Assembly: GCA_009103225.1 (NCBI GenBank)
Contig: RHPI01000810.1
Location: 1,405,962-1,469,961 of the forward strand
Source of the DNA: Chlorokybus atmophyticus
Lineage: Eukaryota > Plantae > Mesostigma and Chlorokybus algae
DNA: 64,000 nt
Reading direction: 5' to 3'
The translations under genes were made by a program, and so were the position numbers. Every line of letters begins with the position of its first letter. Position 1 is the first letter of the stretch. The notes beneath the pieces were generated by a model. The model did not search any database. It saw nothing but the letters and a program-made list of their open reading frames with translations, and was not told the DNA's origin. Positions 20,245-53,188 of this stretch are shown piece after piece.

Positions 20245-22019
20245 TCATATCCAATCCATCTCCTGCAGCTTCAACGGCAGATACACTTCCGACAGGTACT
20301 GGAACCCAAACGAACTCAACGCCTCTGCAACATACATGCACAACACGTCAGCACAGAACACAACCAAGACTCTGACTTGGGCACAGCATGCAGACGATGC
20401 ATTGCTGCACAAGTGAACACCATTGGACTTACGTATTTCGGCCTTTTCTTTGGAACGAACCATGAGATCGAGTTCTTTATGCCAGGCTGGGTTGCTGCTG
20501 ATGAACTCTTCTTGCAGAAGCTCGCGACCAGTCTTTATATCGGTGTCGGTCATCGGAAGGCGGCACTGCTCGGGGATGTGATAGCGGTTGAGGTCGGAAG
20601 GACGCACGCCAAGCCACTTTATATCCGGGGTGGTGAGGTTGGCAGAATCGTAAGACATGTTCTTGCTGCCACTCATGTACACGGATAGGATCTTGAGACC
20701 ATACGGGTCAGCATCCACAAGCCCGAGGACAGGAATGCGCAGCTGAAGCTTCAACCTTCTGAGAAACAAGCGGGTTGCCACATCTGGCTGGCCTTTTGCT
20801 GTGAGTATGATACATGGAAAGCGGTTGTAGAAACGGTCTTCGGCAAGGCGCATAAATGCTGCGTCCTTCTCCACTAGCAGTATGAATGTGGCATCAGAGC
20901 GGATGTTGTTCACTCTGTCGAGGTTGGGAGGGATGGCTTTTCCCCCGATGCCCATGCGAGTGCAATCGATGGTGTCACCGTCTTCATCAAATTGCAGCCG
21001 CCCGACAACAACACCCTTCTCGGATGCGACAACGCTGAGGGATGAACGTGTGCAGCCCAGCATGCAACTGACGTCTTCGAGAACGGCATCAGACTGCCCT
21101 TGCTCCACAAACAGCTTCACGTCGGTGTAGAATAAGTCGCGCTTGGTGACATGTATCCTCTTCAAAGACAGCTGGTGGATCTGTTTTGTTGTCACACACC
21201 AATGAGGTTTAGGGTGTGTACTGCTGAGCACAAGTGCAAAGGCTGTGTCAGCTAAACACACACGACACTCAAGCCATGTAAGCCAACGACTCACCTACCT
21301 TGACACAATCACATGTAATGCACACAATTGTTTGCCGTTAATGCTGCTAGAGTAGGCTGTAAGCATTGCTTGTCTGCTCGAGTATTTGCATGCAACCCAA
21401 TCAACACTAACCATACTACTGCAGCATGTACGCAGCTGTTGAGTCAGTTGATGAATTGCAACAACACTGATTGCTTGTACACATTGCCATAACGGACAGC
21501 TCCAAATAAGGTACGTTAATAATACAGCCATGCATGCCCAAGTGCATGCAACTGTATTGAGCTCCACGCATGCATGGCAACATGCAGGACGCGCACCAGT
21601 TGTAGGACGCGTGCGGTAATTGTGGCCTTGCGGACTGTGGAGGTGTTAGCAAAGGGCCGCACTGACTCCTTGTCCTTGAGCACAATGCGGTCCAGCTCCT
21701 TGACATAGAGCTGGTTACCGGCCGCCCTGGAAGGCACCCGCCAGGTGAGGCCCTCGCCTGCCACGATCTGGGCGGCGGCATCAGTGAGAGCGGCTTCTAT
21801 AAGCGCCACGACGTCGTCTGTGGACACCTCCTTGACTTCCCTGACGCCCTGCAGACCGAGGTCCGCCAGCGTCCTGGAGCCCTCCTTCACCGCCGCCGCC
21901 GCCATGCTGGCAGCCAGCTTCTGCACGCCCTTAAGCACCTCCCCGTCGCTCTTCAGCTTCTTCTTCATCCCCAGCGCAGCGGCGGCCCCCTCCCGCTCCC
22001 TGCCCCTGGCCGCCGCCAT
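20245..22019 (-). CDS. TOP6A: DNA topoisomerase VI subunit A (SPO11-3/RHL2 type), 3 exons
   Basis: [23 protein letters not shown]; catalytic Tyr in TKRDLFYTD; Toprim motifs LLVEKDAAF and [13 protein letters not shown]; [22 protein letters not shown]; C-terminal KAEI|[26 protein letters not shown]. Confidence 0.96.
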
Positions 22020-23133: not shown

Positions 23134-24406
23134 CTAGATTGCACGGTAGTGTGCAACAGTATCCTCAACAATAGCGAATGACTCCTCTAGCTCGCTGCGA
23201 TCCATGCCATGCTGCGTGAACTGCGGACAATGAGTTGCAAGATGCAGGAGACAAGAACAGATGTTGACTGCTCAATTGATCAGTAACAACACGTGCATTG
23301 CCAACAGCATGCTGCTTTTCTACGTGCGCAAGGAGGATGCAACAGCAGTTTTGGGTTTTCTTTCAAAGCATACTAAATGAACACGAGTCCTCATACCTGA
23401 TGCACAAATGCATTGGCCTGCAGCATCGCATAAGCATTTGGTAGCATGCGACTGAGCAAGGCTGCCCCAGCTTGCGAGTTGCTGATCACGCCAGCAGCCA
23501 CCTCATTCTAATGAATACAAAATGTGAGCCGTCAACTTGGCACAATGTTAACAGCGTGTGCAATGTTACTCACCCCTGCGTAGGGTGCAAGGCACCGGAT
23601 GGACTGCATCGGGTCAACCGACCATGCCGCGTACAATGCTGGATCAGCAAACGCGGATACATCTGCAGCATCAGCGCCCCGGCCATGAAGTGCAATCACA
23701 TTTGCAACACACTTGTTGGGACCCGGCCAGTTCTGATGTTCACCCCTATTGGCATTGGCAACTGTTTGCCGCAGGCGATTTATGACCGCCGGCCACGTGG
23801 TCGGCAACGAAAAAGAACCTGAGACACAAAAGCAACCATGATTTGTCAAGGATTGCCATTACCAACTGTGTGTGCCATTGCACTCTTACCAGATGGACCC
23901 TTGGGACCTGGGAACACGTCGCTGGTAAGCAGCCTGTATGCCGGATGAGCACATGCATGGTGCAGGACATCAGTGAAGGCGTCTGGAGCAGCCATAACGC
24001 TGGCAAGCGAGTGAGCGCATACAACATTAAGCTCGGGCATGCCGGGCCGAGCGGCGCCTAACGCCTCCATCGCCACAGCCTGACACAATCAACCACAATG
24101 TGCCATGTACATGGAATCTACCTTCTGACTGTGCACTAGCATTGCACGATTGGGTATGAGCGTGACGATCTTTGTTCATTGGTCGATGTGGCCCACTGTA
24201 TGTGCATGTCTGTGAGTGCGTCACACCAACAACTTAAGCACATAATATGTCGAGTACTAGTAATGCACTGCATATTAGCTTCCAACCTTCTGCTTGCGCG
24301 AGTAAGCAATGCATGAAGCGTTGCAAACTCGTGCGCAAGTGCAAGTGCGAGTGAAGTACCAAATAGACAGTTTGCTGCTGCAGACGGTATACTGCTATTG
24401 CTTGTA

Positions 24407-24439
<33 letters not shown>

Positions 24440-25097
24440 CACTCAGTGTGCGTACACTTGAGCAAATGCACACCTGCAGTTTGTCGTTTGGGTGGAGGGA
24501 GATGGCAGCAGCGGTGCGCAGGTGATGAGAGATAGAAAGGAGAGCATTGTACGATTGCACTGCGACGTCGCTCCCACCCGCAGCATAGGGGGCGACACTG
24601 ACGCTAAAAGCTGGCAAGCTGAGGCTTTCAGCGACTGCCTCAGCTATGCGGCAGCCCAAACCTGAGCCTGTGCCCCCGGCGACACTGCCGATGACAGCGA
24701 CGCCGGCAGGGCAGTCTGCCCGCTCCACCTCCTTCCTGACGGCGTCCACCGCCGCCTCCGTGAGCGCCGGCTGGGCGTAGTAGCCCCTCGCCCAGCAATT
24801 GCCCGACCCGCCCTGGCCGGCCACGCCGCTACCGGCAGCGTAGCGCCACGTGTCGCGCCGTGAGCTCGCCCTCGCCGCCTCGGCCACAGCCTTGGGCTCC
24901 GCATCCACAAGCACAGCCCTGGCCACGGCTACACCGCCGCCCACCCCACCCTCCCGAAAGTATACACCTTCCTCCCCTCCACCACCTCCTCCACCTCCTC
25001 CTGCCCCATACAGCGCATCCAGTAGCGCCGGCCCAAGCTGGTTCCCGCACTGGCCAACCTGCACCGCCACCACCGCCGCCTCCGCCCCCGCCCCCAT
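23134..25097 (-). CDS. TUBD1: Delta-tubulin, about 5 exons
   Basis: VAVQVGQCGNQLG; VARAVLVDAEPKAV; GSGNCWARGY; RKEVERAD; SVAGGTGSGLG; VAVQSYNALLSISH; HPAYRLL; TWPAVINRLRQ; NKCVANVIALHG; ISNSQ...AFVHQ|...GMDRSELEESFAIVEDTVAHYRAI* (stop 23134-23136). The D-x-E-PKV motif, TW..L..LRQ and the short C-terminus fit delta better than alpha, beta, gamma or epsilon. Confidence 0.9.
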
Positions 25098-25171
25098 CAA
25101 CAACAACCACTGTGTACAGTGTACAGTGTTAAGGACAGGCATACCTACATGCCTGTGTAGGAGCGCAGCGC

Positions 25172-29367: not shown

Positions 29368-32300
29368 ATGGGACCGCCGCCGCGTGGCCGCACGCCGCCT
29401 GGCGCCAGGCGGCGTGGCGGTGGTGGAAGCAGGTGGGACGAGCACAGGGTCAGATCCTAATCAGGGTTTGACCTTTGCGCTTTTTCTGCTCCTCTCCTTG
29501 CCCGTTACATCCTGAACACACGCTAATATGTCGTGTCTTCACGAAACAAACATACTTACCTCAATAAAACTATCAACTCTTTTAGTTATAAATGCTTTCA
29601 CGACAGTTTCTTGACGAGTGCTGCGGTGGGTTGGTCATCCGCACACGACATGTTCTTTTGGGCAGAGTGGCACTCACGAAAATGGGAAAAACTTTTTCTG
29701 TTGTGATTGACTGAATGCAGTGCAGATGATGTCTAAATTTCAGTTGCAGTAGCTGCTAGTTGTAAGTCAGCGCACGCCCCTAACTGCAAGCATAGTAGTT
29801 TTCTTCTTATGGCACTCAAGTTAGAGGCTTTGTGCATGGAGTGCAGCAATTGCAAACGCAGTGCAGCAATTGCACACAACAGTCGACAACAGCAGCACTT
29901 ACTGAATTTGTTTGCACATGCAGTGCACCCACAAGAATACCGAGCAGAAGCCCCATACGCATCCGACTACCTTTTGATAATGAGGTAACGCACTTTACAC
30001 CTTGGATTACATGAGACACCCAACAACGTGTACTCACCCATCCTGACACACACATACAAACGTATGCGCACACCTTCACTGCAATCCAGCATGCATGCAC
30101 ACATCTCGCACGTGCTCTCGCAAATACGCAGACGCAAGCGCACACACAGGCGCGCACATGCGCGCGCCCATATGCACGCACACATGTGCGTATCCTTGCA
30201 CATTCGCAGACACGCGTGCGCGCACATGCACATACACAACAACAAAATTCTGCATGCATGCAGCCTCCCACACGCGACACGTCCACGCCACGACCCATGT
30301 CCTCCCCTTCATCCATACGCGTTCCGCGCTCTCTGGCGCCTGGCGAGGCAGCGGACGAAGAGGGTAAGAGATGTACACCAACTTACAAATGTTGGAAGAG
30401 GGTGTCAGGAGCTCATTCTGGTTGTTCGTGTTGTGTGTGTGTGTGTAGATATCAAGTTGGTATGCGAGATTATCAGACTGGCAGAACGCATGGCTGAGGC
30501 GGAAGCCTTGCCAAGACGCCGGCCAGCACAGGTCTTTTTTCTTTTTGTGTGGTCACATTGTGCTGGTGTGACTCACTCACAACGTACCAACTACACATAC
30601 ACTTACGTATGCAGGTCACCCTCTCAATTGTGTTGCGAGCATACGACAGTGTGTTGAAGTCACATGGGCTGGTAAGGAAGAATAAAGGCGTTAAGTGTAC
30701 TGATGTTCAAGCAGCATTGCAGCAGTTGTCAAAGTTTACTGATGGTGGTTTTGCTGTATCCTTGTTCTTGTGACGTTGATCAGGTGCCTGCAGAAGACAC
30801 GCGCTTCTATCGATATCTCCTCCGCCTTTGCATGGACCCTGAGCCTGATTGGTGGCGCAAGTTGAAGAACGCACGCAGCGTATGTGCAATTCCAACTTTG
30901 TTGCATGTACAAATGCTCGTCTTGTTGTGTTGAGGTCGTTCATGTGTGCTTATGTCTATGTGTGTAGAGTTCACGCTCTCGGCCGGGGACATCGTGTTCG
31001 GAAAGGCCGATATCAAACTGGCAGCAGCGCGGTGTGAATGCCAGCCTCGTGCTGCCGGTAACGTCGATATCGGTTGCACATGAGGGAGATGCCGGCAGCT
31101 GTGTCGATCTCGGGGGTCACGAGCAGGAGTATATGCAGTTCAAGTTGGTGGCCATGTTGTTCCGCAAGTGGCGAAGGTGGGGAAGTACATGTGTGCACAT
31201 GGCACGTGGGTGCGCGACCGTGCGTGCGTGCGTGCGTGCGTGCGCGTGCTCGTGCATGCTCCCATGCGTGTGTGTATGTGTGCATGCACATGCGTGTATT
31301 GGCGTGCGTGTGTGGATGTTCAAGACTACATGAAGACATACTCATCTGGTGGACTTGTGTGTCTACTTCTGCCTGCAGGCGGGCGCACGAGGCCGGTGCG
31401 TTCCGTGTCGCCGCTGCCCACTTTACCAACACGACGCTCTCGCATGCATTCCCGCGCTGGCGTCTCCACGCACGCACCCAACTCCTCCGCGCCCTCTTAC
31501 ACTGGGGCAGGTCAGACATCGTGTTGTCATGGTTTGGCCAAGAGCATATGCGTGTGTAGTGTGTATTTGACACAACATGCCCACAGTCGCACGCTCAAGT
31601 TGACCTTCCACACATGGCGAGTGTATACCAGAGTGGTAGTCACAGCACGAGTCAACGCATACCAATGGCGCGCGAAAGGGCTCGCCACGCGTGCGTGGGA
31701 CACGTGGCACGCGCGCATGCAACAACAAAAGGTACTGTTGTTGTTGTTGTTGTTGTTGTAAGCCAGCAACTCATAGCCTTTGCAATAGAGAGTGGCGAGT
31801 GACACGCGCAAGGCTTTAGCGCATTGGCAAGAGCGCGTCACGGCAGCCTCATTCCAACGTTGGCGCGGGTGCGCGCGGGGCTACTCGAAGCGCGTGTCCT
31901 CTGTCATGGTACACATACACACATTGACAACATACACACGCACAAGCACACCACGAGTTGCAAACTTCACATCGCACTGGTCTGCGTGTGATTGTGACAT
32001 TATCCCAGGCACACATGAGGCATGCACGGAAGAGAAGGTGGTTGAGAACGTGGAGGCGGACGGCTTCTGCACTGCGTGCTCGCAACTCGCGCGCTGAAGA
32101 AGTGGTAAGCATAGCATTGTACTGTTGTATAGTCTTTGGTCACGACTACAGTTGGTCACTATTGTGTCGTATTGTGTGCGCATCAGAGAAAGAGGCGCAC
32201 CAGACGGCTGCGCAAGCATTGCCTTCGGACATGGCGCGCATGGTGAGTGTATGTGTGACTTGTGTTTGTGACTTGTGTATGTAACTTACCCATCCAATGT

Positions 32301-35300
32301 TGTTGTCTCTGTGCTGCAGGTGCGTGCGACGCACGTGGCTAAATGACACGCTTGAGGCGTGCGAGCACGTCCGCTATCAGAACACCTTGCAATGCGCTAT
32401 GCACGGTACGTTTGAACACTGGCATGCATTGTTGTGTGCTGGTGTGTGTGTTTTGACGTTGTGTGTCCTTGGTCAGCGCAGGCTGGCAGCGCGTGACTCG
32501 CACTCGTATTGCAAACACAGAACGTGTACACGCCATGCGAGTGAGCAGCGCAATGCGCCTAGCCAAGTCTTTCCTTCAACACTGGCAGGCAAGCTGTTGT
32601 CATTGTTGTTGTTGTGGATTGTGCAAGTCACCTTTGCGTGCAAGCAACATGTTGGCTTACGTACCTTTCTTGTATCAGGCTTACCGAACTCGCATGGAAA
32701 GGCTGAAAGAAGTTGGATTTGTGGCGGCGAGGCGGCTGCGGTCGTTTGCGATGGCGAGGGCGTTCGCCACGTGGCGCACGTGGGTGGGATGCCGACAGGA
32801 CGCGCGGGTGCGGGCGCGTGAGTGCGCCCTCGCTGTCTTGAAAGGGTAAGACACATTGCGTGTGCGTGTGCATATCTTTGTGAAACAACTTTGCATGGAG
32901 GCATGTTGTGTTCACCCTCACACCTGCCTTTTATGTGCCTTGCGTGTGTTGTGGTTGGCAGCGTAAAGAGGCGGTGTTTCCTTGGGTGGAAGGACACGGT
33001 TGCAAGAAAACAGCAGCTGCGGGAGGTTGCGGTTGAAGTTGTCGGCCTCATGCATACGCATGCACGCCGACGGTAAGCACCCGGCCTAGACTCACACGCA
33101 ATTACTCTTGTTGTGTGGTGATCAATCAATCACGTGACACGCACAACATGCGACGTGACAGGTTCTTCGAGTGGTGGGTGCAGCGCACACAACACCGAAT
33201 CGCCATCCGCAATGTACGCAACACATTGTGTGCATGTGGTAGTGCCACTCGAGTCGCCAACAACAAATCTCACCTGTTGTCATGCTTGCTCTCAGATCCT
33301 TGCACAGTGGCGCTCGGAGCGTCTCCGCCTCCTTCTCTCCAACACATGCGAGGCTTGGAGCACCTTTGCACACACGCGCTCCCGCAGACAGGTACATATT
33401 GTTGTTACTTGGGTCAGTTTGTTTGCTTGTTGGAGTTACCAATGAGTGTTGCATGCTGTTGTACCTGCTGATGGGTTGTTCATGTCGTCTCGCAACAACA
33501 GGCACTGCTTGAGGGATTTGTCACTGCCAAGAATGCGCGAGTGTGCAAAGTTGTGATGGAGTCGATGTATCTGCACGCGACGGTGAGTAAGACAACACAT
33601 CAATGTCGGCGCGGTTGGCATGTTGCAGGGTCCTCACGATGTCATTAAACATCATTGTGTGTACTCGTGCAGGAGAGGCGGCGCAAGAAGAGGTTGATGC
33701 AGAGGGCGCTCAAGCTTTTGGTCCTGCTGAGCATGAGCAAAGCGTTCCGGCGATGGCAAGCACTCCAACTGCAAAGGTACAGCGTGTTGGACGGGTCACA
33801 ATCATCATGGGCGAGTGCATGCAAGTGTGCGCGTGGGTGCGTGTTTGTAGTGTGACGGCTTATTTGGTATCCAGGAATCGTCTTCGGTTGTTGTTCAACC
33901 AACTGAACGGCAAGACCTCCATTCGTACAGCTGCGGTCACGTTCTCCCGTTGGCGTGCCGGCGCGTGTGTCTGCACCCGCACGCGCGTTCAGAAGGCACG
34001 CGCCGATGCGCACCGACTGCGCAAGATCGGTCCCGTGTTGATGTCGATGTGGCGCGAGTACATGCGCGAGCGACAACGCGAAGGAGGGCTCGTGGCGAAA
34101 GGACTCGAGGCGTGGGGGAAGTATGCGGAGAGAAGGTGTTTCCAACGCTGGCGAGACTTCACACACCACTACAAGGTGCATGCTAGAGCTCGTTTTTGTG
34201 CATCTGCACACATACTCTTACACACGATCGTGTATGTTGTCGCAACAAATACCCCATGAAGCTCCATGCGTACACCCATACTTGTACATCTGTTCAACAA
34301 GCAGGCACAGGTCAACACACGTGCATAATGCATCCTGTTTGGACACATTGCGTTGGACATCGTGCACGAAACTCATGCTCCATTCCCACACTCATTGCAA
34401 AGCGATTCTTCTCATCTGTGTGCAGGTGGAAGGTGCCAAAGTCCGCCACGTCGCCGCGATGTGGCACCGGCGCTTTGCGGTCTCTGCGTTCGAGCGCTGG
34501 CGCGACTTCACCGCGGAGTCAACCGACGCCAAGGATCGCATGGCCGTCGTACTGCTGCGCATGCAGAATCGCACCGCTGTCAGAGCCTTCAACGAATGGG
34601 CCTGGTACACACACAACATCGTGTTGTGTGTGTGCGTGTGTGCATTCCTGCGCAGTTGTTTGTATGGGGTGGGGGAGATGCATGCGTGTGCGTATACATG
34701 CATGCATGTGCACGTGTGCGTGCGCGTGTGCATGTGCGTGTGCGTATGTGCGTGCGTTCATGTACGTGTGCATCTGCGTGCGCGTGCGTCTGCACGCTTA
34801 CGCACGTGCAAGTGCGAGTGTATAGTGTGTAGACAAACAAATTAAAGTAGAAAGTTCTCATCAGGTTTGTGGAGTACCGACTAGGCAAGCGGGCTCAGTA
34901 CGCGATGGTGGACGATCGTCGTCGCGCACGTGTGATGTCATCCTCCCTTCGCGGTTGGCATGCCGCCGTGGTGCGTATAGCCCGCTACCGTGGCGTGATT
35001 ACTGCTCTCGCGGCCACTCGCCGCCGCCACCTACTCTCGCTCCTGCTGCCGTTCTGGCGACGGCATGCGAGGTGGGATGGTGTTAAAAGAAGGGTAGTGC
35101 CGCTCGCAATGGCGATATTCGCGAGAAGCGCAGGGAGGAGAGCGCTCGAAGCCCTCCGCGAACACGCCATCAAATGGTGAGTCACTGCATGTGTTGTGCA
35201 TACACACGGTGTTGAAGGAGGCGCATCACATCAACAGACAATACCGCTTGATCAAGTACTTGCATGCCCAGCAGCTGGCATTGTGTGTTGGGGTTGGAAG

Positions 35301-38300
35301 GCTTGAATACAGGGGAGTTGGTGTATGTTGGGTTGTGCGCGCGCGCGCGTATGTGTGTGTGTGTGTGTGTGTGTGTGGTATCCGTAACGCTGTTGGTGTG
35401 TGCAGTCGGCTCAGACACCGTGCATGCCAGTTCTGGCTACAGCATTCCGTGCGTGGGATGTTGCGCCATTGGCGATCAAGCGCTCGGCGTAGTGTGCAGC
35501 TCAAGCTCGTTGTTGGCCGCTTGATGCAGAAGGTGTGTACCCGTCGTCAAGACAAAACATGTTCTGCTCTCATTGTTGACACACATTCACCCTGCATACC
35601 TGTGCCAGGTGGAAAGGAGAGAGAAGGCGAGTGCGTTGGCGTGTTGGCGTGTTGGTGCGGGCGTTGTGATGGAGAGGCGAGCAGTGATGTTGACAGCGTT
35701 GCGGCATTGGGCGATGGCGTGCCAACGTCGTTGCTTGAAACAATGGCGTGAGTACATCTCCTCTCAACGCAGCAAAGAGTCCCGCACCTTATCAGCACTC
35801 AAGTTGTGGAGCGCCCACTCGCAAAGGGCGTGTTTCAACACGTGGAAGGCGCATGTTGGATTGCGAAGAGTTGAAAGCCGCGCACTCGATGGACGGCGTG
35901 TCCACATTATGAGGCGAGCGTATCTATGTTGGAGCGAGTTTGTCCTTGCGAGGGCAACAAAGCATGCGGGGCTTGCGCGTGCACATCATCATCGAACCCA
36001 CGCTGTGTTACGCCGAGTGTTGTCAATGTGGCGGACCCGTGCAATGCGTCAAAATGCGTTGAGACAACGGCTCAGCATGCGTCTGGCGTTTGTGTCACGC
36101 CGGTGGCAAATGTCCACATATTTGGCTTGGAAGCACTTTGTCACGCTGCGTCGACACAAGAACGCGCAAGCCAACTGTGCGCGCGCAGCGTGGGCACGTC
36201 GCACGTGCGGGAGAGTTGTGAGAGCATGGCAAGCGCACACCAACGCATGTCGCCGGGCAATGAGACACAACAACAACAAGCGGCTCACGTTGTGCGTGCG
36301 TAGCTGGCAGCACTTCACTGCCGTGCGCAGATACAACAACGCGCTGCGCACGCGTGCATCAAAGTACCACTCACGCCAGTACATGCGGCACGCGATGCAC
36401 GCGTGGCGCCAACGCGTGTACCTCGCACGCCACATCAAGCGCTGCGTGCTCCGCATCATCAACGTCACGCTGGGGAGAGCGTTTGCGCGTTGGGTTTCCC
36501 ATGCGCGTGAGCGTAAGGCACTGCGTGACCACGCTTGCATTGTTGTCAGGCGCTGGAGCGCACTTCCGCTTGCTCAAGCGTTTCATACATGGCGAGACAA
36601 CATGCATGAGTAAGTTGTTGTTGTGTATCTAGTCTAGTGTCCCATGTGCACACGTCAATGTGCATAGTGTGTTACGCCACATCGCTAACTCTTGCATGTG
36701 TGATTGCAGTCGCATCACCGCCACGTACTTGGTGAGCAAGAGTCTTCACTGCTGGGTACACAACAACACGGTACACAGCAACACACACTCTCGGTCACGC
36801 ATATATGTGTACACGCCATTCGCGGTGTTACTCACATGCTCTGTTGCATGCAGCTCCCAGCGTTTCAGCAATGGCGTGCATACGCAACAGACCGTGCGCA
36901 CGCACGCCAAGTTGTCAGCCACGTCATCTGGCGTTGGCAGCACAAGTTGCTCACGGGTGTGATGCATGTGTGGCGTGCCCACGCGCGCGTGCGTGCGGAG
37001 CAGAAAGCACACCTTCGCGCCGTGATGATGCGTTGGGTCTTGATGGACCTCGCGCACGCGTTCGCAGCGTTGAAAGCCACGTGGCTTGCACGTAAGGCCG
37101 CACGCGCGTGTATTGGATGGATCGTCGCACCCGCACGAGCAGCAGCATTCCACACGTGGCGAGATGGCGTGCAAGAGTCCATGCGTGTGAGGCGAGTGGT
37201 GAAGTGTGCGGTGTATAGGTGGCAACACCCTAATGCTGCGGCTGCGTTCAACACGTGGCGTGTACGCGTCGATGAACAAGCTTACAATCGCTGCGTACTT
37301 GAACGCGCCGTACGCGAATGGATGGTATGAATGCACACAGGTTCCAACTTCTTACGCACATGCACACGCACGCGCACATTGACATACTTACAAATGCGTG
37401 CACCCACGCACACGTTTGTATGCGCACCCACATGAGCATGTATGTGCACGTGCGCATGCACAGACTGTACATGCGCACACACGCGCACGCACGTACGTGC
37501 ACGCCCTGACTTACCCAACAAACCCTGACTGGGTCCCCCTTCCACACAGTTTCCAGCCCGTGCCTCTGCCTTCTTCCGCTGGCGCCTGTCTGTCTCCCGC
37601 TCGCGTTCAGTGCGTGCGTGCGCCGCATCAGCTTTGCAACGCTGGCGTCAGATCACGCAGATCGTGGCCTTTGGAAGATGGAAGGAGCGCACGCAGGAGG
37701 CGAAACGAGTGAGGGAGACGGCGAGAGGATGCGTGGCGGCGTGGCAGAAGCCAGAAGTGGCCAAGGTGAGGGGAGCGTTGTTGTTTTTATCGTCTTTGTT
37801 GTTGTTGTTCTGTTGGTGTTGTTGTTCTGGTCATCATCGTTGTTGTCAGCCTGCACAATTACATCAGACACAACCACCACCACAATATTGCGGAGCATTG
37901 TCGTTGTATTTGTTGTTCTTGGGGTTTTGGTGTCTCAACTGTTTTCCCACAACAAATTCGCTTGTTCATTACCAGTCTAGCCTGAAGCTTGACTCTTGTC
38001 ACCACTTAGGCCCTGCGCACATGGCGTGCCTTCCCTCCCCTTCTCCACGCCCTCCGTCTCGCTCTCCACCGTTGGCGTGTTGGCCCTTCCCTCTCTTCCG
38101 CCTTCTCCCGCTGGTCCACTTTCACCACAGAGCGCGTGCGTGCCGTTACGTTGGCTGCGCGAGTTTTGTCGGCCTGGACCAACGCGCCCGCCGCGAGGGC
38201 GTACAGGACGTGGGCGACCAACGTGGAGTGGAGGAGGGAGAGGAGGGAGGTCGGGGCGAAGGTGGTGAGGAGGTGGAGGGCGGGGGAGGTGGCGAAGGCG

Positions 38301-41300
38301 TTCGATGGATGGCGAGAAGGAGCACGCGAGGTGAGGACAAACACACATCGTTGCTTATGGTTCAATGCACACGTGGTTTGTGAGGCTTGATGTTATGGTG
38401 GCTGCATAGTACCATGACCTTAAGCCCCACAGAAAGTACGTGCGTGTCACGTGTGGGGTCTGGGGCTTGCAGCCTAGCGCTATTCTGGGGAGTTCATGGT
38501 GCTTTATGCCCGGTAATCTATAACCCCACACAACCAACATGCGCGTGTGCGTGTGCATGTGCGGCTGTAACATGGTCCTGTGGTCAAGTCATCTGACTGG
38601 CACATCTGTGCACTGTGCAGCGCAAGCGTCAGCTGGCCTCAGCCCGTCGCGCCCTCTCCTCCTGGCACTCTCCTCTCCTGTCCCGCTCCTTCTCTCGTTG
38701 GCACCACATCACCACTTCATCCCACACTTCTCGTCTCCTCGTCTCCCATTCCCTTACACGCTGGCTCAACCTGCCCGCCGCGCGCGCCCTGACTGCGTGG
38801 GCAGATAATGTGATGGTGCGGAAGGAGGGTAGGAGGGTGGCTGTTAAGGTTGTGTCGAGGATGAAGCAGGGGATAGTGTGGAAAGCGTGGGGACAGTGGA
38901 GGGATGTGTGGATGGCGAAGCGAAACGATAGGAACAACGAGGAGGTGTGTGCACGCGCGCGCGTGTGTATGTGTGTTCGTGTGTGCGCATGGGTGTGCGT
39001 GTTTCTTTGATGCACGCTTCTGACATGTTGGTACATGGGCCTAAATCAGGTTGCTGCCGATTTTGCACGCCAGAGGCGTGTGCATCGGACGTTCCGAGCT
39101 TGGCATGAAGATGCGAGGTGTGAATGCAATAGACACACATGCATTCTAGCAACGTGGGTATGTCCTTTGCACATCACATACAACGACTGTGTGTTTGCAG
39201 GAGAGAGGCGAGAGAGCGGCGACTGAAGCGCAGGGTGTTGCTGATGCTGACCAAGGGTGCGATGGTGTGTGCGTGGCGGGCGTGGCGGGACCGCGTTGAC
39301 GCACGGCATGCGCGGTTCCTTGCCATCAAACGCCTCGTGCAGCGAGCCATGCATCCCGTACTGGCCGAAACCTTCCTTGCTTGGAGATATCCTTTACAAC
39401 ACCTATGGCTGATACATTAGCTATCGTGCACGCATGCACACATTATACACACATACACAACCACACACACACATGCACACTGCGCGTGGTTATGTGCAAG
39501 CGCACATGTGCATTCAGGTATACCAACATGCGCAACACGCACTGACAGGCACATTAACACACAAGCACGTGCTGGTGTTGGGTTCCTTGACTGCATCTCT
39601 GTCTCCACGGCTCGAGTCGATGCCGCAAGCAAGGTCAAGTTCGGCTTGGCACGCTATGATCAGCGTCTGCTGCGTTCATGCATCATCGCATTCCGTCTCA
39701 ACATCACCACCAACGAGGTGAGGCAACACCCAACACATATCCACACATCCGCGTACGCAGTCAATGTGGCATTCTTGCTGATGCTGTGTTGCCAGGTGGG
39801 AAGGTGCGCGATAAGGAGGATGAAGGCACCCCTTGTCACCAAGGCTTTCAACGCGTGGCGTGACAGAGTGGGCGTGTCGGTCCCTTTGCAATCCCGCGTG
39901 GCGCACTTGCGCGCCCGCGTGGACATCCGTCGCGCGATGAGGAGCGATGTTGCGTGGGCTTGTTTGCTAAACCATCCCGCTCGAGCGAGGAGAGTGGAAC
40001 AGTATCTCTTATGTGGCAAAGAGAGGGAGCTCGCGCTCGCATTTGATGCGTGGATGGAGCATAGAGAGCGCATGCAAGCCGTGAGAACGGTCGTTCAGGT
40101 GATAACAGACACAACGCTCCGATACGCGTGGCGCATGTGGCGCACACGGGTTGATAGCAAAGCAGCCATGAGGACATCCATTGAACAGGTACACATGCTA
40201 AGAGTATGCAGTTCTGATGTTGTTGAGGTCAATCACAAGCACGCAGGTGTGCGCACACACGCAAATACACACGTGCGCCCACATCTGCACGCGCACTCGC
40301 ACGCACACGTGCGCGCACACACACACTTTTCTCTCTGTTTGCGCGTGTGTAGATGAGCACCCTGCTGGCAGACCGCGACAACGCACACTTACTTGCAAGT
40401 GCCACACGTGCGCTATCACACTGGCGCGACCAACAGCTATCCACCGCGCTGCGGAGCTGGGTATCGTATACCCGCGCGCGTCTCCGCAAGCGTGCCAACA
40501 TGCTTGCGGCGTGCGACTTTCAAGACCGAATGCGCGCCCAACGCGCTATGCAGTGCTGGCAATGTGCCGTGGCGATCGTGCGATTGCGGCGGCAAGCACT
40601 CCTACACTATGTCCACACATTGCGCTGTAAGCACATATGTGTGGATGCGATATTACATGATGTGGGGGTACTGTTCTTGCTGTTTACGTGTGTGTTGCAA
40701 CAAGCTCAACACAAATCACTTGACCTCACCACACATGCCACCTCATGTATTGAACCCAACAGAACATGCTCACCAAGTCATTTCGCATTGTCTCACATGT
40801 TGTCTCATGCAGCACGCGCATTCGATGCGTGGCGAGAGGTGTGTGCGCTGCGTCAACAACAGCGTGCTCGCAAGCGCGTGGCAATCGCACATTTCAACGC
40901 AACGCTCTGCCGTTCACACTTCCTCACATGGTGCACGCTCACACCATCGCTGCGGTACCAACGCGAGCGTGTCGAACACGCCGTGCGCACGCACACGTCG
41001 CGCATGTGCAAGCGTGTCATGTTGGCGTGGCGTGACTACACACGCAAGCGTGTGGCGAAGAAGGAGAGCGTGTTGCGTGTGAAGAGAGGGGTTGAGGTTG
41101 GCATGTTGAGGCGGTGCTTCACGTCGTGGCGTGTGCGCGCACGTAACAGACGTGTTGGCGATCTTGCACTCGGGCGCACGAAGAAGAATAGGCAGTTGTG
41201 TGTGGTGTTCTGCGCGTGGCGCGCACGCACGCAGCACAAAGGCGTGGATTATCAGGTACGCAAGTAGAGCGCTATGTACATCAAACATGCAACCTTGCAA

Positions 41301-44300
41301 AGGTGTGCATGCTTTGCACATCTTATGCATAGTGCATTGATGCATAGTGTCTCAAAGGAGCAGAACAAACATCACTTGAGATTCCAGCAACTGGCAAATC
41401 GTATGCACACGCAAGGCAGCGCATGCATTACAGTACAGACCTATACGTGTGTGTGTGTATATATGATTGCGCGCGTGCTTGCGCGCACATGCACGTGGGT
41501 GTGCGTGTGTGCGTACTTGTGCAAGTGCGCACACATGCACAAGCATGCGTATGTGCACCTGGGCATGTGCGCGCATGTCTTTGTGTGTGTGGGTGGGTGC
41601 GTGTGGGTGCGGGTGCGTGTGCGTGTATGTGTGTGCGCGCGTGCGTTCAGGTAGTTGACAGCGCTCGTGCAGGGTCCGCTACTGCAGCAGCGTGTGCTGG
41701 CCGCCTGGCGCTCGCACACGCGTCACGCAGCTCGCCTCCAGCTTGTGTTCCGCGCGGCCGGCGACACGCTCACTCACAGCAGCGGAGGCGTCGCGTCCTC
41801 GACAAAGGCGTGCTTTTACACCTGGCGCGCGAACGTGAGGGCCGCGGCGCGCACCAAACGCACCGCACGACGCGCGATCGCGAGATGGGTGTGTGCGATG
41901 GAAGGGAGGGCGTTTGCTACGTGGCACGCCAAAGTGGACAAGGTGGGTGGTTCTTGATGTGCACGTGTGCGTGTTATGTACTCTTTTTGGCATGTGCCTG
42001 TGCGTGTTCGTGTTCTTGTTCTTGTTCGAGTGCGTGTGCGTGAGTGTACAGGCATGTGCGTGTGTGCGTGCGTCTGTATGTTCGTATGTGTCACCTTTGG
42101 CACGTGGTTCTGCACTGCTTGCACGACGAGTGTACTTACATGCACGCCTGTCATTACTTGTAGAAGCAAACATTGGCAGCAAGGCTCCACCTGTACAATT
42201 GCGAGCGCCGCGCCTCGCAACTCGCTCACGCCTTTGCCGCGCTCAACGCGTACCGCGCTGCTAGGGCGCGTGCACGCTCTCTCATGCACGCCATTGTGGT
42301 GCGGTGGTCGCAACCCAGCGAACACAAGGCCTTTACCCGATGGTAAGCACAAGATAAGAATATGCTCTGTTGATAGTGCAGTTCCATCAATGGAGACACA
42401 CACTCACTGTGCATGTGCGTGTGATGTGATATAGTTACAGGCACTTTTGTGGGGATGGTGACAGAGGTGATCGTGTGCACATACGCATGCTTGTGTATGT
42501 GTACGCACATCCGTGTGTGTGTGTGTGTGTGCATGTGCGCGCACACGCGCATGCGCATATTTACGCGCATGCATGCTCACGCACATACACGCGCACACAC
42601 ATGTGTGGATGTCATCTACCCACGTTACCCTTTGCTGCATGTGCAGGTATGAGTGGACATCAGAGCGCATCAATGCTCGCCGGCTTCTGCAAGCTTCTCT
42701 CCACTGCTGGCGCTTCGTGCGCGAGCACGAGGCGCTTCGCTGTTGGCGCGAGCGCGTTGTTGACGAGCGCCAACGCAAGGCTGTCACCGGGCGGGTTGCG
42801 GCCAACATGATGCACCCGCTGCTGGCTCGAGCGCTCAGAGGGCTCAAAGACCACGTCACGAAGCAGCGAGAAGCTCATGCGTTCGCACGTGCGAGCCTGC
42901 TCAGGTGGCAATCGATTGGCGTGGTGACGGCGTTCGACCATTGGTGTGAACACACTACTCGCAGCACTCGCATCAGGTAGATATTGTGCCCATCAACACA
43001 CACGCACACATACACACACAGGTGATATATGCAGGCTGACGCGCACTTGCACACGCATGTCCACACATGCGCGCAGACACAAACACAGAGCATCGTAGAC
43101 ATCAATGTACTGTTGCAGAGCTTAAGGTAACTGCTAGCGGAGCAAACTTGATGAGTGCATGCTTGTGTGCAGGCAAGTTGCGGAAGGTGGAGCCATGAGG
43201 CTGTTGTATCTTCCACTCTCTCGAGCCTGGAATGCGTGGGTGGCGACCGTGCGTGCCCAACGTGCGAGGGAGGAAGCCCTCCTCCACTACACGCTGCTGC
43301 GATGGCGGCGTGGGGTGCAGGGTTGCTTTGTTGCTTGGCGTGAGCGCGCACAGAAATCAGCAGAGATGAGAGGAGTGCTCGCACCATATGTTGGCACGTG
43401 GGCCCATGCAGACATCGCACCAGCCTGGCGACAGGTCTGTTTGATTTAGTTGTGTGTTTGCGCACAAGAGTGTCGCTACCTGTGGGTTGATGGCAAGGCA
43501 TACTGTAAGTGGCTGATAGTGGTGTTGGTCTGTTTAGTGGGTGTGGTGGACGCGTGCCATAACAGCTGCAAGGCGTGTGGCAATCGCATTCAAGCACTCC
43601 AATGAGCTCAAGGTAAGCAGCTATGACCGCTGCTCAAAGCTACTTACTTGTGTAGCAGTATATGTGTGGTTCTCCTATATAACCCAACATATCCATTCAA
43701 TGGCAGGCCTTCCATGCGTGGCGGAACTTCTGTCTTATGCGCAGTGCCGTGCGCACACTCGCACAGTACAGCAGCATAGTGCTCTCTCAGCGCTGGCAGC
43801 GGTGGCAGCTGCTGGTGCAGCTAAGGCGTGAACGGCGTGCCAACATTGCCATTGCCCGGGACACGCACCACTGCTCCCTTGCGCGCAAGAGCCTTCTCGT
43901 CTGGAAGGAATGGACTCAGCTGCTTCACAGGCTGCGCACGTACCTGCAAGGTGGTCTGCGCGCACGCCTTGCAAGCGCTTTCTCGGCCTGGCATGAGTAC
44001 ACGCTTTACCAGTAAGTATGTGTAAGATAGAGAGACAAACAATACTCGAGGCATTGCCGCACTGATTGAGCCTTTGTGTGTCTTTGCTTCTGGCAGGAAG
44101 CAATTGGTGCTGACGGGGAGTATGTTGGCTCTGCGTCGGCGAGTGCGCTTGCAATCAAGCACCATGAAGGATTGGAGGTTTCTTGCGCGCTCTGAGCGAC
44201 ACTGGCGACTTGGCGTACTCAGGAAGACTTGGGGGGTGAGTTGCTGGTGGTTGTGGCTACATTATTAGCGCTCCCTTCTGTGCATGCGTGCATGTGTGCG

Positions 44301-45988
44301 CTTGTGTGTGTGTGCGCTCATGTGCAGATGTGTTATGAATCAGGAGCTTGCGCTTTATGCCACGGCCAAGTCGTTGGCAAGGCAGAAGCAAGAGATGGCT
44401 CGGCGCATCATCGACTCGGGCCTGCAGTCCCGGGTGCTGCGGCACTGGAGCAGGTGCAAAGCCTCTGATGATGGTGCTGATGTGTTCACTCTGTGCGCGT
44501 TTGTCTGTCCAACCAACATGGCTAATGCCATTCGTATCATGAGCAGCACTACACGCGAGCTTGTGTATCGGCGAGAACAGTATCTGCATCGCAAGCGACT
44601 CATGCAGGACGCTCTAACACGCGGAGATGCAACGTGCGTGTTACTACCTCTGCTCAGTAGTTGTTGTATGTTGGTCTTCGCATTCCAGTGCATTGACTTT
44701 ATCATGTGCTCAGGGTGAAGCGCAGGAAGATGCAGCTTGTTACCTTTGCGTTCAGCGAATGGGCAAGAGTGGTCAAACTCTACAGCAAGATGCGCGCGTA
44801 CACGCAAAGGAGGGCTCTGAAGTTGGGCAAGCGCGCGTGGCAACAATGGAGGACTTACATTCATTGCCGCCGAGAGCTGGCTGTCAGGACCCAACATGCT
44901 GCCCAATACTCTGAGCACACGCTTCTGCGCCGCTCGTTGGCAGAGTGGAAACGCAATCTGGAACCGGTCATGAGCACAACGAGAGCCAAGCGCAGTTTGG
45001 CCGACGAGTTCGCCAACGCATTGGTCGCTGAACACGCATTCAAGGCGTGGAAAGACCATCATGAGAGGACTCAAACTCTCCTATTGGGACTTCATAAGGT
45101 GCGAGTGTGTTTGTCGTCATATCGCTATGAAGCTACATAAAAAGATGTTGTGTTCTGTCGTCTTTGCTTACTCTGGAGCTGTGCAGTGCTTTGAGAAAAT
45201 TCAGGTCACAGAGAACCGTTTACACATGCAGCACGCGATGCAAGAGTGGCGCGGTTTGTTGGCACGAAAGTAAGCAATACAACCATCATGACAAGCATGG
45301 CCAAGTGGTGCTGCAGCTGTGACCAAACGCACCATTCTTGCAGGGACTTGCATGAAAGGCAGCTTGAGAAGGCGAGGATCAGGCTCTCATACCTGCTCCT
45401 CCGCAACACGTTCACACACTGGCAAACATTCGTGTCAGCTGCGGCTGCGGTTGGGTCAGACAAGGGGTTTGGCAGGCAAGGTGAAAGGGAAGAGTTTTCT
45501 ACACCTGCAATGCATGTTGGAAGGGGAACAGCTTTATCGGCCCTGGCACCCTTGTCAGATGTACAGCGCTGGATGCACAACTCCCTGGATGCTTATGAGC
45601 AGGTATGTGTGAATCAACCGAGCGCCTGCTGGTAGTTGCTATCAACAACCTTGCCTGCTATGCGCTTGCATGCTTCAATTGCAATTAAAACACATACACT
45701 GCTCAATCCTTCATGATTACATCAGAGTGGCAATTTTGTGTGCAAGTTGAACAATACTTCACGACCGAGCCATTTGCATTAAACATCTCGCGCATGTGCG
45801 AAGTCCAACCTGCTGGTCACTCACAGGTGACACCCATCACGCCCATGGACGTGCAGACCCCAAGGAGCTTTATTGGTAGCGACTCGGGGCGTTCAGACCG
45901 CTCCACTCTGCTCAGTGACTGGTCCGGCATGCTCGGCAATCACGCTCGGCGCCTGCAAGCACTGCACGCCAGACGGGCCACACGCTAG
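29368..45988 (+). CDS. SFI1: Giant Sfi1-like (centrin-binding Trp repeat) protein, roughly 45-50 exons and ~3,000 aa by manual estimate
   Basis: Dozens of exons encode R/A-rich helical repeats ending in (A/C)F/L-x2-W, e.g. CLKQWREY...ACFNTWKAH (33-aa spacing), RAFATWRTW, KAFDGWRE, AAFNTWRVR, LAFDAWME. N-terminal exons read VTLSIVLRAYDSVLKSHGL|VPAEDTRFYRYLLRLCMDPEPDWWRKL and the last exon ends HARRATR* at 45988. The start ATG at 29368 is tentative. Confidence 0.78.
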
Positions 45989-46022
45989 ACAGAGACAAGT
46001 GCTGTGCATAGTAAGGGTTCAA

Positions 46023-49000
46023 CTAAGTAGTAGTTTTGTCTCTTGAGACTCGCCTAACAATCAAGTGACCAAACTGGCAGGCTCCAGGAGAGGAGCCTTC
46101 AAATATATACGGGGTGTGCCCTGTAGCACTGCAGTATGCCTGTTGAATCTCTTGTATGGCTGCATCACTTTCCGGCCCCACTCCGCCCAATGCACAAACT
46201 GTTCCGCCACTCCCACCACCGGTAATCTTTGCCCCGAACAAAGCATTTGGCTTCCTCTGCAGGAAGCAGTGTATCAGCGACCAACAGTTGATTGCATGTG
46301 CTTGTGCGTATATGTGTGTAGCCACGCTGCCAACACTGAACTGTGCAAATACTGTGTTTGGCAGACTCGCAATGTATGCATCTCCTGTTGCGTCCAATGT
46401 CTAGTCGAAGCAAGTTTGAGGTGCCTGGGTTTGCTTGCTAGTTTGTTGTCACACATTCTTTCTCCATCAGTGTGTACCTGCTGCATGTCTTCCACGAGTG
46501 CCACCAGCAGATCAGTGCCGGGAGACCCGAGGCCACACAGCGAGTAGCTTGCATGGGATTGATACATCAGCTCGCCTAGCACGGACAAGTCGCACTCGGG
46601 GGCTTTTAACAACTGCGCAAAGGTCTTAACACGGAAGTTCTCGTTGATCGGATGTGCCATGGGCGTGCGTACGGCGTAGTGTGTGCTGGGGTTGATGGTC
46701 GTGACGGTGTCCTCATGACTGCCATACTTGCTAATAAAATTGGAGCCCAGTATGTGATCGGGTATTGCTGGGGCATATGATAACTCCAACCGATGAGGGG
46801 GGACCTGCAAGCGTTGTGAATACACACGCTCATGGTGATGATGTTCCGACATTATTGGACACAGCAATATCAACTGTGGTCACATGCGTCAAGGGAACAG
46901 CGCCCTAGATCGTAGGAAACTCCCAAATATATGTACACACTATACTCCGCATTAAGTTGACACAAAACAACCTAGCAATAAGTGCACACAGCAGCCCCCG
47001 CCAAGATAACCCAATGGATTACCTGCACCAAGTGCTTCATGTTGGCTTCTACATCACTAGAGGCGATGCGTGCCGACACAGCGTCGCTGGCAGTGGCAGA
47101 GGTTGCGGCTCTTTGCTCGGCGGCAAGCGTAACAATCTTGCGTCCCATGAAAGCACCGATGCGCACTGACCCGTAGTCTGCACCTCCAACACTGTGCTTC
47201 AAACCTGCAAGGGTTCACGCAGAGGAACACTCTGTTGGTGGCATAATTGTTGCCACAATTGGTTGTAAGTAGAATCTCCTGAACTAACCAGAGTCCAAAC
47301 CCCAGAAGCGCATGTGCGGTGGAACGGATATGAGTCCTTGTATCTCTGCTGGTTGGCAGAGGAGTGCCAACAGTCGGTTCGCTTGACCACAAGCACTTGC
47401 CATCTGGTCCATTACGCCACATGGTGCTCCAACAACAAGGTTCTCCACCTGATAACAAGAATGCATGAGAAGATGCACGGTCAAGCACAGTTCATTCAAT
47501 CTCAAGCGTATGCTTTTGTATCGTGTGCTTGTATGGTATACTAAAAATAACCAGCAAACATGCACATGAAAGCGATATAGACCTAAGTAAGCCGACACCT
47601 TTTGACAAAGGATTGCCAGCTCCCTGGGTTCCAACTGTACGTGATGGGCCGCAGCGATTGCTGCCATGGAGGCAACCTCAACAGCAGCTGAAGACGAGAC
47701 ACCCTTCCCCTCGGGCACAAGAGAGTGCACAAGGATGCTCATGCCGTCATCAAAGCGTGTGCCCTTCTCTCTCATGAGCACAAGCACTGTGCAACACAAC
47801 AAACACCAGTATGTTGGTACACAGTAGATGATGTTGTCTTCCAAGGCAGATTGATAGTCAGTAGGTGCAATGTTTCAATGAGTACCAGCGCCCGCAATGT
47901 ATGCCGCCCAGCTGCGAGACTTGTCTTTGTGGAAGAACTCGCGTGCTGCTTCATATGAAATAGGAACCTGCTGGCCATCTGCCTGCGAATAGGGTGTGAG
48001 AGGATGACAACTTGATTCTTTTATATATGCATTCAGCACCCACCTCAGTGTATAAATCAGCCAGATCCATGTCAAAGGTCGCGGCGCGGAAGCCAGCCTC
48101 ACTGTTTAAAGAGACGATGCGCAGCACCTGCAGTTGAGTCGTTAGCTGCACAGCTGGAAGATAAAAGATAAACGGGACAGTATACACTATACAACTGCTA
48201 CCTGAGTGTTGTCTAGCTTGCCACTCTGCGCCAGCCTAGCCTCTGTGTGCTTCCACAAGCGCTGCCTGCCTGCTTGTCGCTGAAGCGCCACATGACATGC
48301 TTCCTTGATAGGCATCTATTGCCACCAACAGGTCATGTGGACGTTCAAGCCATTGTCGTAGCGCGTACTCATGGCATATAAACAAGCAGCACCTGCAGTA
48401 CAAGGCTGCCGGAATAGTCGGCAATGCCACCCATAACATCAAGCCGGCCAGGAGCACGTGTCACAATGATGTCCTCCTCGAACCTGAACAGCCCACACGC
48501 GGCACGCTCTTCGCTGGTAGCAGAATTAGAAAGCTCTGCTGGATCATCACCAATGCGCGACAGAGTTTGCAAAAAATCTTCGGTGTCTGCCAAGCCAAGC
48601 GTTGATCCGTCAACAACCTGTTAGGAAACAGGTGGCCAAGTCAGACTGGTTGCAGAGGGTGCATAGGTTGTCGTGCATTCCCATTACCAATACTATGATG
48701 CACTATACCTGAAAGGCGCCATGCAAACCGCCAGCCTGATGCTCCAATTCTGACTGAAAACACGGGGCAATAGTGAGCATACTTCTGTGCAGTCACATTT
48801 TGAGTGCACCAAAGCATGCAACCATAAGAAGGCTGCAAAAGATTGACTGCGTACCTGGGCTGCGGCTGAGCTGTCCAATGCGGTACTTGCAGAGTCAACC
48901 TCAAAGCTCTTTCGCCGCGCGTACCAGTCTGGAACATTAAGCTCATCTGTTCGTTGCAGGAGAAAGCCGAGCACTATGGCATCGCGCAGTCTTTTCTTCC

Positions 49001-51871: not shown

Positions 51872-52183
51872 ACCGGCAGCGTCCTCACCGCTTGCCTGCA
51901 GACATGTCTTCAAGCACATGCTCAACACTGTACACCAAAACCGTCCGATGAACAGGTCACTTGATATCTAACGGCTGAAGCTGCTTTTGGGCCAACCGAG
52001 GACTAAAATCTCCTCTTGACGGACAATCCAACCATAGTCTGGTTACATTACTTGGCTCGAACTGCGCACTTAAGCATTGAGCTCGGTTGAAGTCTGCACA
52101 CGCAACCTGCCAAGCCGGTTAAGGCGACAGCAGTTCAATAAGTTTGCTGCAGCCGCCTCAGTCTGGTCTTTTTGGCGGAGGAA

Positions 52184-52192
52184 TTAGGGTTT
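52184..52192 (+). promoter_or_regulatory. Telo-box (TTAGGGTTT = reverse of AAACCCTAA) ~100 nt upstream of the RPS18 ATG
   Basis: Exact motif, with site II motif TGGGCC at 51988-51993. This pairing is known from plant ribosomal protein promoters. Confidence 0.6.
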
Positions 52193-52293
52193 GGTCGCCG
52201 CCGCCGCCGCCGCCGCTTCCGGGGCGAGGGAGGGCTCCGGAGGGGAGCTTCTTGTCGTTGACGTTGTCGTTGTCGTTGTCCGTGTCTTTCAAG

Positions 52294-53188
<895 letters not shown>

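Follow-up and report, generated by a model that had tools for sequence, protein, structure and literature searches.

Does the forward (+) strand between positions 29368 and 45988 of the window, by which we mean the whole analysed stretch of 64,000 nucleotides from Chlorokybus atmophyticus contig RHPI01000810.1, encode one giant protein, and if so, of what kind? From 29.4 to 46.0 kb this strand is without a long open reading frame (ORF) and displays many segments free of stops, with translations that end in tryptophan (Trp, W) at regular steps; between about 31.1 and 45.5 kb the Trp-ended units are separated by gaps of 12, 21 or 33 residues. The original prediction was a single giant Sfi1-repeat gene in a streptophyte genome, with 45-50 short exons on one strand, about 9.3 kb of coding sequence and about 3,000 residues. 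The locus was found to be one nuclear gene of 49 exons with both end coordinates exactly as predicted, a coding sequence of 9,369 nt and a product of 3,122 residues. A public Chlorokybus protein maps exactly to the locus, and the 3' part is bridged by an RNA contig.

A single gene of 49 exons

The joined reading frame, made up of 34 annotated and 15 RNA-supported exons, starts with the ATG at 29368 and stays open over 3,122 codons; its sole stop codon is the terminal one at 45986-45988. The exons have a median length of 132 nt (range 52-1,001) and the introns of 101 nt (range 57-491). Intron phases 0, 1 and 2 occur 27, 4 and 17 times, a skewed distribution in which phase 1 is scarce. The introns also carry many TG/CA and CG/TG microsatellite-like runs. 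The predicted protein has a mass of 367 kDa and an isoelectric point (pI) of 11.8, and contains 16.7% Arg, 13.4% Ala and 4.5% Trp (140 W); nearly its whole length is predicted to be alpha-helical. It is composed of a short low-complexity N-terminus, a four-helix domain of about 80 residues, about 83 Sfi1-type repeats and a short non-repeat tail. The joined model was used for frame checks and counts, while database and fold searches were performed with single exon translations or with the public protein. The coding span and the exons of its 5' part are as follows.

29368-45988, + strand: whole coding span, from the public protein mapping (29368-43195) and RNA contigs (40353-45988)
29368-40188, + strand: the 34 exons of the 5' part, from the public model Chrsp103S01046 by exact residue mapping, with GT..AG junctions
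29368-29432, 29924-29984, 30264-30363, 30449-30531, 30615-30671, 30784-30879, 30968-31176, + strand: exons 1-7, public model
31379-31510, 31587-31731, 31789-31908, 32009-32104, 32187-32242, 32320-32405, 32482-32540, + strand: exons 8-14, public model
32679-32845, 32962-33072, 33162-33213, 33296-33391, 33502-33582, 33673-33776, 33875-34175, + strand: exons 15-21, public model
34426-34604, 34865-35176, 35406-35532, 35609-36609, 36710-36770, 36854-37324, 37550-37765, + strand: exons 22-28, public model
38010-38330, 38621-38944, 39050-39117, 39201-39256, 39518-39717, 39796-40188, + strand: exons 29-34, public model
35609-36609, + strand: the longest exon (1,001 nt), with about ten consecutive repeats, public model
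39201-39717, + strand: ambiguous exon boundaries, annotated or alternative splicing

The public protein, here called P0001 (EukProt EP00898 P005954, which is JGI Chlat1 Chrsp103S01046), is 2,352 residues long. An exact position in the window was obtained for 2,348 of these, distributed over 40 blocks that begin with the ATG at 29368 and reach 43195. The 34 exons of the 5' part are based on this annotation and on the register of the repeats. They are supported because the repeat register is kept over the junctions, and because exons 3-6 are validated by the orthology of the N-terminal domain described below. At 12 of 29 annotated junctions in this part the flanking W residues are exactly 12, 21 or 33 residues apart. 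Between 39201 and 39717 the annotated exons (39201-39256 and 39518-39717) give a stretch of 111 residues without W, while an alternative pair (39201-39357 and 39664-39717) preserves the frame as well as the W repeats; the difference between the two versions amounts to 15 residues. A dynamic-programming gene finder of our own gave 55 exons and 2,711 residues. It invented tiny exons and overran the true stop, and it was replaced by the annotation and the RNA joints.

RNA runs from two studies, X1 (2021) and X2 (2013), contain the transcript. Among words sampled from 34000-43999 the fraction present was 0.53 in X1 and 0.41 in X2, approximately the exon fraction of that interval. Contigs were aligned on 40300-46299, and a single X1 contig of 6,779 nt together with three X2 contigs aligned in 15 blocks with 14 GT..AG joints, beginning at 40353 and including the stop codon; given these joints, the contigs come from spliced mRNA. 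The donor and acceptor of every joint were verified, and the frame from 40353 is open over 1,120 codons, ending at the stop. The contigs continue past it as 3' untranslated region (UTR) to 46260. The 3' third is thus established as transcribed and spliced, with these exons:

40353-40626, + strand: exon, X1 and X2 contigs, joint 40626/40813; the public model reads part of it in another frame
40813-41255, + strand: exon, X1 contig, joints 40626/40813 and 41255/41673
41673-41942, + strand: exon, X1 and X2 contigs
42164-42342, + strand: exon, X1 and X2 contigs
42647-42976, + strand: exon, X1 joint 42976/43173, X2 contig to 42977; public model end at about 42890
43173-43434, + strand: exon, RNA contigs; the public model falsely ends inside it, in another frame, with its last residue at 43195
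43538-43612, + strand: exon, X1 and X2 joints
43707-44011, + strand: exon, X1 and X2
44097-44235, + strand: exon, X1 and X2
44344-44453, + strand: exon, X1 and X2
44547-44633, + strand: exon, X1 and X2
44714-45098, + strand: exon with the best Pfam Sfi1 match (PF08457), RNA contigs
45187-45269, + strand: exon, X1 and X2
45344-45602, + strand: exon, X1 and X2
45827-45988, + strand: last coding exon with a Ser/Arg-rich non-repeat tail and the stop codon 45986-45988, RNA contigs and open frame

Five exons of Chrsp103S01046 deviate from the RNA contigs. The model places boundaries at 41129, 41733 and about 42890 where the RNA has them at 41255, 41673 and 42976, respectively, and these wrong splice sites shift the frame and thereby bring the model to its end at 43195, about 770 codons early. 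Taken at face value, that end implies that the locus consists of two or more separate genes. This is hardly credible, since one X1 contig spans the joint 42976/43173 and every later joint with the frame open to 45988. The X2 contigs are concordant at every joint that they cover, and the last exons of Chrsp103S01046 use splice sites absent from all contigs. For 40.3-46.0 kb the two-gene reading is therefore rejected, because the RNA bridges position 43195. The public gene model is thus corrected from 2,352 to about 3,122 residues.

The repeat array and the N-terminal domain

The two parts of the protein that could be delimited are:

30354-30873, + strand: N-terminal four-helix domain, residues approximately 73-152, from phmmer, alignments A1 and A3, a domain hidden Markov model (HMM) and AlphaFold2 (AF2)
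30850-45422, + strand: array of about 83 Sfi1-type repeats, from the first W (residue 145) to the last repeat W, from the W ladder, logos and statistics

In the three longest exons the distances between neighbouring W residues are almost solely 12, 21 and 33, where 21 and 12 add up to 33. Trp-ended repeats spaced by about 33 residues, often divided into 21 and 12, had been predicted, and the assembled model bears this out with 59 W pairs at distance 33 against 6.2 +/- 2.5 in shuffled sequences. Chaining W residues greedily with a minimum distance of 23 gives 83 members; of the 82 successive spacings, 32 are exactly 33. The motif [FLMIV]xxW[KR] occurs 50 times in the model (6.9 +/- 2.6 in shuffles). 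In the reading frames of 31.0-45.6 kb it is found 61 times on the + strand and six times on the - strand (base shuffles 9.5 +/- 2.9), and elsewhere in the window at about 0.4 per 1000 residues. Given this contrast between the strands, the repeat signal is strand-specific. An iterated 33-residue repeat HMM built from the long exons, used as a strand control only, found 26 units on the + strand and two weak ones on the - strand; it recovers just 26 because unit length is variable and introns interrupt the units. Tandem Repeats Finder detected no 99-nt array in the DNA, only short TG/CG-rich intron microsatellites, which suggests that the repeats are old and diverged. No Rfam family matched in the window.

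Sfi1 repeats have the consensus AX7LLX3[F/L]X2W[K/R], with a spacing of 23-36 residues that is 33 in human SFI1 (Kilmartin, 2003; PMC2173958). Counted at the unit-ending W, the Chlorokybus repeats agree with this consensus at each position examined: F, L, M, I or V is found at position -3 in 81% of the units (background 24%), K or R at +1 in 52% (21%), A at -16 in 39% (13%), and a hydrophobic residue at -7 in 61% and at -8 in 52% (both 37%). The spacing lies within the Sfi1 range, and the main period is the same as in human SFI1. On account of consensus and spacing the repeats are classified as Sfi1-type. Membership judged by the curated profile was not found. The best score for PF08457 (Sfi1), obtained with the exon translation 44706-45137, was 19.5 bits (E=4e-4), below the gathering cut-off of 22, and nothing was found for nine other exon translations, P0001 or three chlorophyte orthologues. 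The expectation that the repeats would score as Sfi1 thus holds for consensus and spacing but not for the Pfam profile. The absence of a catalytic domain was also as predicted, and Pfam found no other domain in the ten exon translations and P0001. With the three chlorophyte orthologues, the Chromosphaera protein described below and other search hits included, Pfam gave just two Sfi1 matches in all, both sub-threshold.

A profile of 28 units lying within exons (alignment A2) was compared with 177,635 PDB sequences, and the top match was 2k2i_B, a human SFI1 peptide in complex with centrin 2. It aligns to the repeat profile end to end and with the terminal W in register, but the match is weak (E=0.34). 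phmmer found no match for the 326-residue exon in the PDB. In the ESM Atlas the top cluster for a repeat exon was a chlorophyte hypothetical protein (0.92), with an Sfi1 cluster at 0.76; these matches serve as leads only. The array contains 32 prolines in 2,890 residues (about 1.1%). AF2 predicts about 90% helix with short breaks for 35633-36610 (326 residues), at a low confidence (predicted local distance difference test, pLDDT, 47). Such a model is compatible with a helix that requires a partner, though it is no evidence for this by itself.

The partner of the helix punctuated by Trp might not be centrin but, for instance, nucleic acid or a different EF-hand protein, the likeness to Sfi1 then being convergent. 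The lack of a significant match to curated Sfi1 models speaks for this, as does the extreme basicity (pI 11.8, 16.7% Arg). However, the pattern fits the centrin-binding triad and in addition A at -16 and K/R at +1, which goes beyond a W periodicity alone, and the top PDB match is the SFI1 peptide bound to centrin. A basic scaffold would also suit centrin, originally described as an acidic protein (PMC2115177). We therefore consider a non-centrin partner very improbable.

For the N-terminal domain, AF2 gives four helices with pLDDT 80.7 and a predicted template modelling score (pTM) of 0.72. When residues 1-150 were used in phmmer, eight giant chlorophyte proteins matched with 36-54 bits, always at their N-termini. 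Alignment A3 of the domain has eleven invariant columns and displays the pattern ...VTLxxVLxAYxxVLxxHG...EDTxYYRxLLxLSLDPExDWWxKL, and the domain HMM also recovers two proteins that were not among its seeds, P0033 (3,611 residues) and Tetrabaena P0039. The domain has no Pfam match and no PDB sequence match, Foldseek of the model against the PDB gave nothing at E<=0.001, the best Z of 5.5 in a wide VIA-align search is at the noise level for helical bundles, and the ESM Atlas holds no named relative. A word search with the domain alone found only the self-match among 72 candidates, which is no evidence of absence. In the searches made here the domain was recovered solely in green-algal giants and in two intronless ORFs. 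It is previously undescribed.

Giant relatives in green algae and beyond

The original prediction did not count this protein class among those characterised in the lineage. The class is neither peculiar to streptophytes nor unannotated, as chlorophyte orthologues of about 2,400-3,960 residues with the same N-terminal domain exist, several of which bear the automatic UniRef name "Sfi1 spindle body domain-containing protein". All of these orthologues are automatic annotations. HMMER with the 326-residue exon 35633-36610 had one strong match, P0001 (E=2.5e-206), and 18 weak ones. A word search with full-length P0001 led to four giants, P0008 (3,440 residues), P0032 (3,251), P0033 (3,611) and P0034 (3,831) from Pleodorina starrii, and the last of these was used as query for further relatives. 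The giants found are:

Chlamydomonas reinhardtii CHLRE_09g404500v5 (Cre09.g404500): 2,527 residues, P0034 search
Volvox carteri VOLCADRAFT_87353: 3,358 residues, P0034 search
Volvox africanus: up to 3,670 residues, P0034 search
Pleodorina starrii: giant relatives of 3,831 and 3,962 residues
C. schloesseri, Tetrabaena and Scenedesmus: giant relatives, P0034 search
P0033: ORF of 3,611 residues at 2001-12836 of L001, a 19-kb contig of NCBI assembly GCA_024449875.1
P0008: ORF of 3,440 residues at 3001-13323 of L002, a short metagenome or run-assembly contig
P0032: ORF of 3,251 residues at 1587-11342 of L003, a short metagenome or run-assembly contig

All giant relatives show a ladder of W distances at 33, 66, 99 and 132. 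The Chlorokybus protein has the same layout as the orthogroup of Cre09.g404500, that is, the N-terminal domain followed by more than 2,000 residues of 33-residue W repeats. The green-algal giants also resemble it in size class and in keeping the 33-residue period throughout, whereas their repeat regions are just about 23-41% identical to it over parts. Its orthology to them is concluded because the N-terminal domain is shared, and the gene is a streptophyte member of a green-algal orthogroup and not a one-off. It is the sole streptophyte member identified in the searches made here, which brought up none from land plants or other streptophytes but cannot show absence. P0008, P0032 and P0033 are each encoded by a single uninterrupted ORF of 9.8-10.8 kb with 33-residue W repeats, and the green-algal domain is present in two of the three.

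Outside the green algae, the ichthyosporean Chromosphaera perkinsii has a protein of 2,181 residues (Nk52_evm25s1810, P0015) with 70 W pairs at distance 33 and a ladder that is even more regular. It shares with the Chlorokybus protein the 33-residue period and a weak, sub-threshold Pfam Sfi1 match, and matches the Chlorokybus exon weakly in phmmer. It differs in being an opisthokont protein and in lacking the green-algal N-terminal domain, as judged by the HMM. Giant Sfi1-repeat proteins with a 33-residue period are therefore not limited to green algae or ciliates.

The full-text literature search, which left most subscription journals outside its scope, found no paper on Cre09.g404500 or characterising any green-algal giant. 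The N-terminal domain ties the Chlorokybus protein to these unstudied giants of Chlamydomonas and Volvox, and since Chlamydomonas has an orthologue in Cre09.g404500, the question of function is testable in a genetic model. The earliest-branching streptophyte lineage is hereby shown to possess a giant Sfi1-repeat protein. Should the presence of the family follow that of flagella across streptophytes, it would also serve to mark where land-plant evolution lost the basal apparatus.

Several other genes are found in the window. An ORF on the opposite strand (24237-25142, - strand), located about 4 kb upstream of the repeat gene, has a clear Tubulin/FtsZ GTPase domain (PF00091, E=2e-30) and a divergent sequence; it may be a centriolar tubulin (delta, epsilon or zeta). 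Downstream, a convergent gene of the GHMP-kinase type is encoded on the - strand (PF00288 at 47287-47844). The end of the last coding ORF of this gene, at 46023, is only 34 bp away from the stop of the Sfi1-repeat gene at 45988. The X1 and X2 contigs pass from the one gene into the other, and the loose end at 46260 reads as - strand protein; either the two genes have overlapping 3' UTRs or they were merged in the assembly of the contigs. The remaining neighbours are:

16940-17626, + strand: XPG/FEN1-type nuclease
20248-21294, - strand: SPO11/topoisomerase VI-A homologue
52144-52647, + strand: ribosomal protein S13/S18

Proposed function and comparison with known Sfi1 systems

By analogy, the protein is probably a scaffold for centrin filaments at the centriole or the basal apparatus. 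Each repeat would bind one centrin through the hydrophobic triad formed by W and positions -3 and -7, on the model of yeast Sfi1p, human SFI1 and the ciliate scaffolds. The very basic helix would suit the acidic centrin, and the protein would form the backbone of a centrin-decorated filament of up to about 0.44 µm, the span computed from its approximately 2,950 helical residues. It is by analogy with characterised systems that we infer centrin binding, filament formation, Ca2+-driven contraction and the identity of the fibre concerned. Several results weigh against a centrin scaffold. PF08457 stays below its gathering score in the best exon and is absent for P0001 and the three chlorophyte orthologues, the 2k2i_B match is by itself not significant, and the AF2 model of the repeats has a low pLDDT. 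Furthermore, the 5' two thirds of the gene model are annotation-based, with the ambiguity at 39.2-39.72 kb.

Centrin was first found in the contractile flagellar roots of green algae, and Chlamydomonas has three kinds of contractile centrin fibres (PMC2289752). No scaffold for centrin fibres is named in a 2018 review of Chlamydomonas basal bodies. The full-text search, which covered few subscription journals, found no paper connecting Sfi1 with the nucleus-basal body connectors, striated fibres or rhizoplasts of algae, and nothing on the flagellar apparatus of Chlorokybus. One version of the centrin scaffold, raised in the original prediction for zoospores, places the protein in the flagellar apparatus as the backbone of contractile fibres (connecting fibre, nucleus-basal body connector or rhizoplast-type root) and not in the centriole lumen. 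We regard this as a real possibility, at somewhat less than an even chance. In size and number of repeats the protein is comparable to ciliate fibre scaffolds such as those of Stentor (1,000-4,600 residues), every green-algal member identified belongs to a lineage that has flagellate stages, and the 2018 review names no such scaffold. A different gene, Cre04.g215800, already bears the name SFI1 in Chlamydomonas (PMC12319295), from which it follows that the giant group is a distinct paralogue. The 33-residue spacing, on the other hand, is that of the centriolar human SFI1 and not the 69 residues of the contractile ciliate proteins. That same spacing, together with the shared consensus and the position of human SFI1-centrin at the distal centriole (PMC9627676), favours an alternative in which the protein is the functional equivalent of canonical SFI1. 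It would then be a centrin partner in the distal lumen, acting in centriole architecture or duplication, with an array that is merely expanded and non-contractile. We consider this unlikely, given the separately named SFI1 gene of Chlamydomonas and an N-terminal domain found only among the green-algal giants and the two ORFs recovered here. The whole centriole is moreover about as long as the 0.44-µm helix itself, which also argues against a place in the distal lumen. To the centrin scaffold a more tentative conjecture, held slightly less firmly than the flagellar fibre, may be added: the N-terminal domain could be a module for anchoring or end-to-end joining, and the system could go back to the ancestor that chlorophytes and streptophytes share.

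In ciliates, Sfi1-like proteins are the giant backbones of Ca2+-contractile centrin/spasmin networks and have a period of 69 residues. Examples are the Sfi1-like centrin-binding protein of Paramecium, GSBP1/2 of Spirostomum (13,125 and 17,974 residues) and the Sfi1 family of Stentor (PMC9946354; bioRxiv 10.1101/2025.08.11.669701). The Chlorokybus protein resembles these scaffolds in being giant, punctuated by Trp and predicted to be helical, with many W[K/R] sites, which in the ciliates bind centrin or spasmin. The units are different. The ciliate one is 69 residues long with a motif of the type KGAL...PKDAxxxW[R/K], while that of Chlorokybus is 33 residues long with a yeast/human-type consensus. 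A W-W distance of 69 is not among the ten commonest in Chlorokybus, and no sequence homology was detected between its protein and the ciliate scaffolds.

Yeast Sfi1p and human SFI1 are centrin-binding proteins of spindle poles and centrioles. Yeast Sfi1p forms a long helix that binds one centrin per repeat (PMC2063913), and with 946 residues it is somewhat shorter than human SFI1 with 1,242; the two have about 21-23 repeats (PMC2173958). Both are similar to the Chlorokybus protein in repeat consensus and low proline content, and human SFI1 also in the dominant 33-residue spacing; a continuous helix may be a further likeness, the helix of the Chlorokybus repeats being predicted at low confidence and with short breaks. 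The termini are not conserved. The Chlorokybus protein further differs from both in its conserved N-terminal four-helix domain, its sub-threshold Pfam Sfi1 score, and the second W that many units carry 12 residues before the terminal one (21+12). With about 83 repeats it is also 2.5-3 times longer than either.

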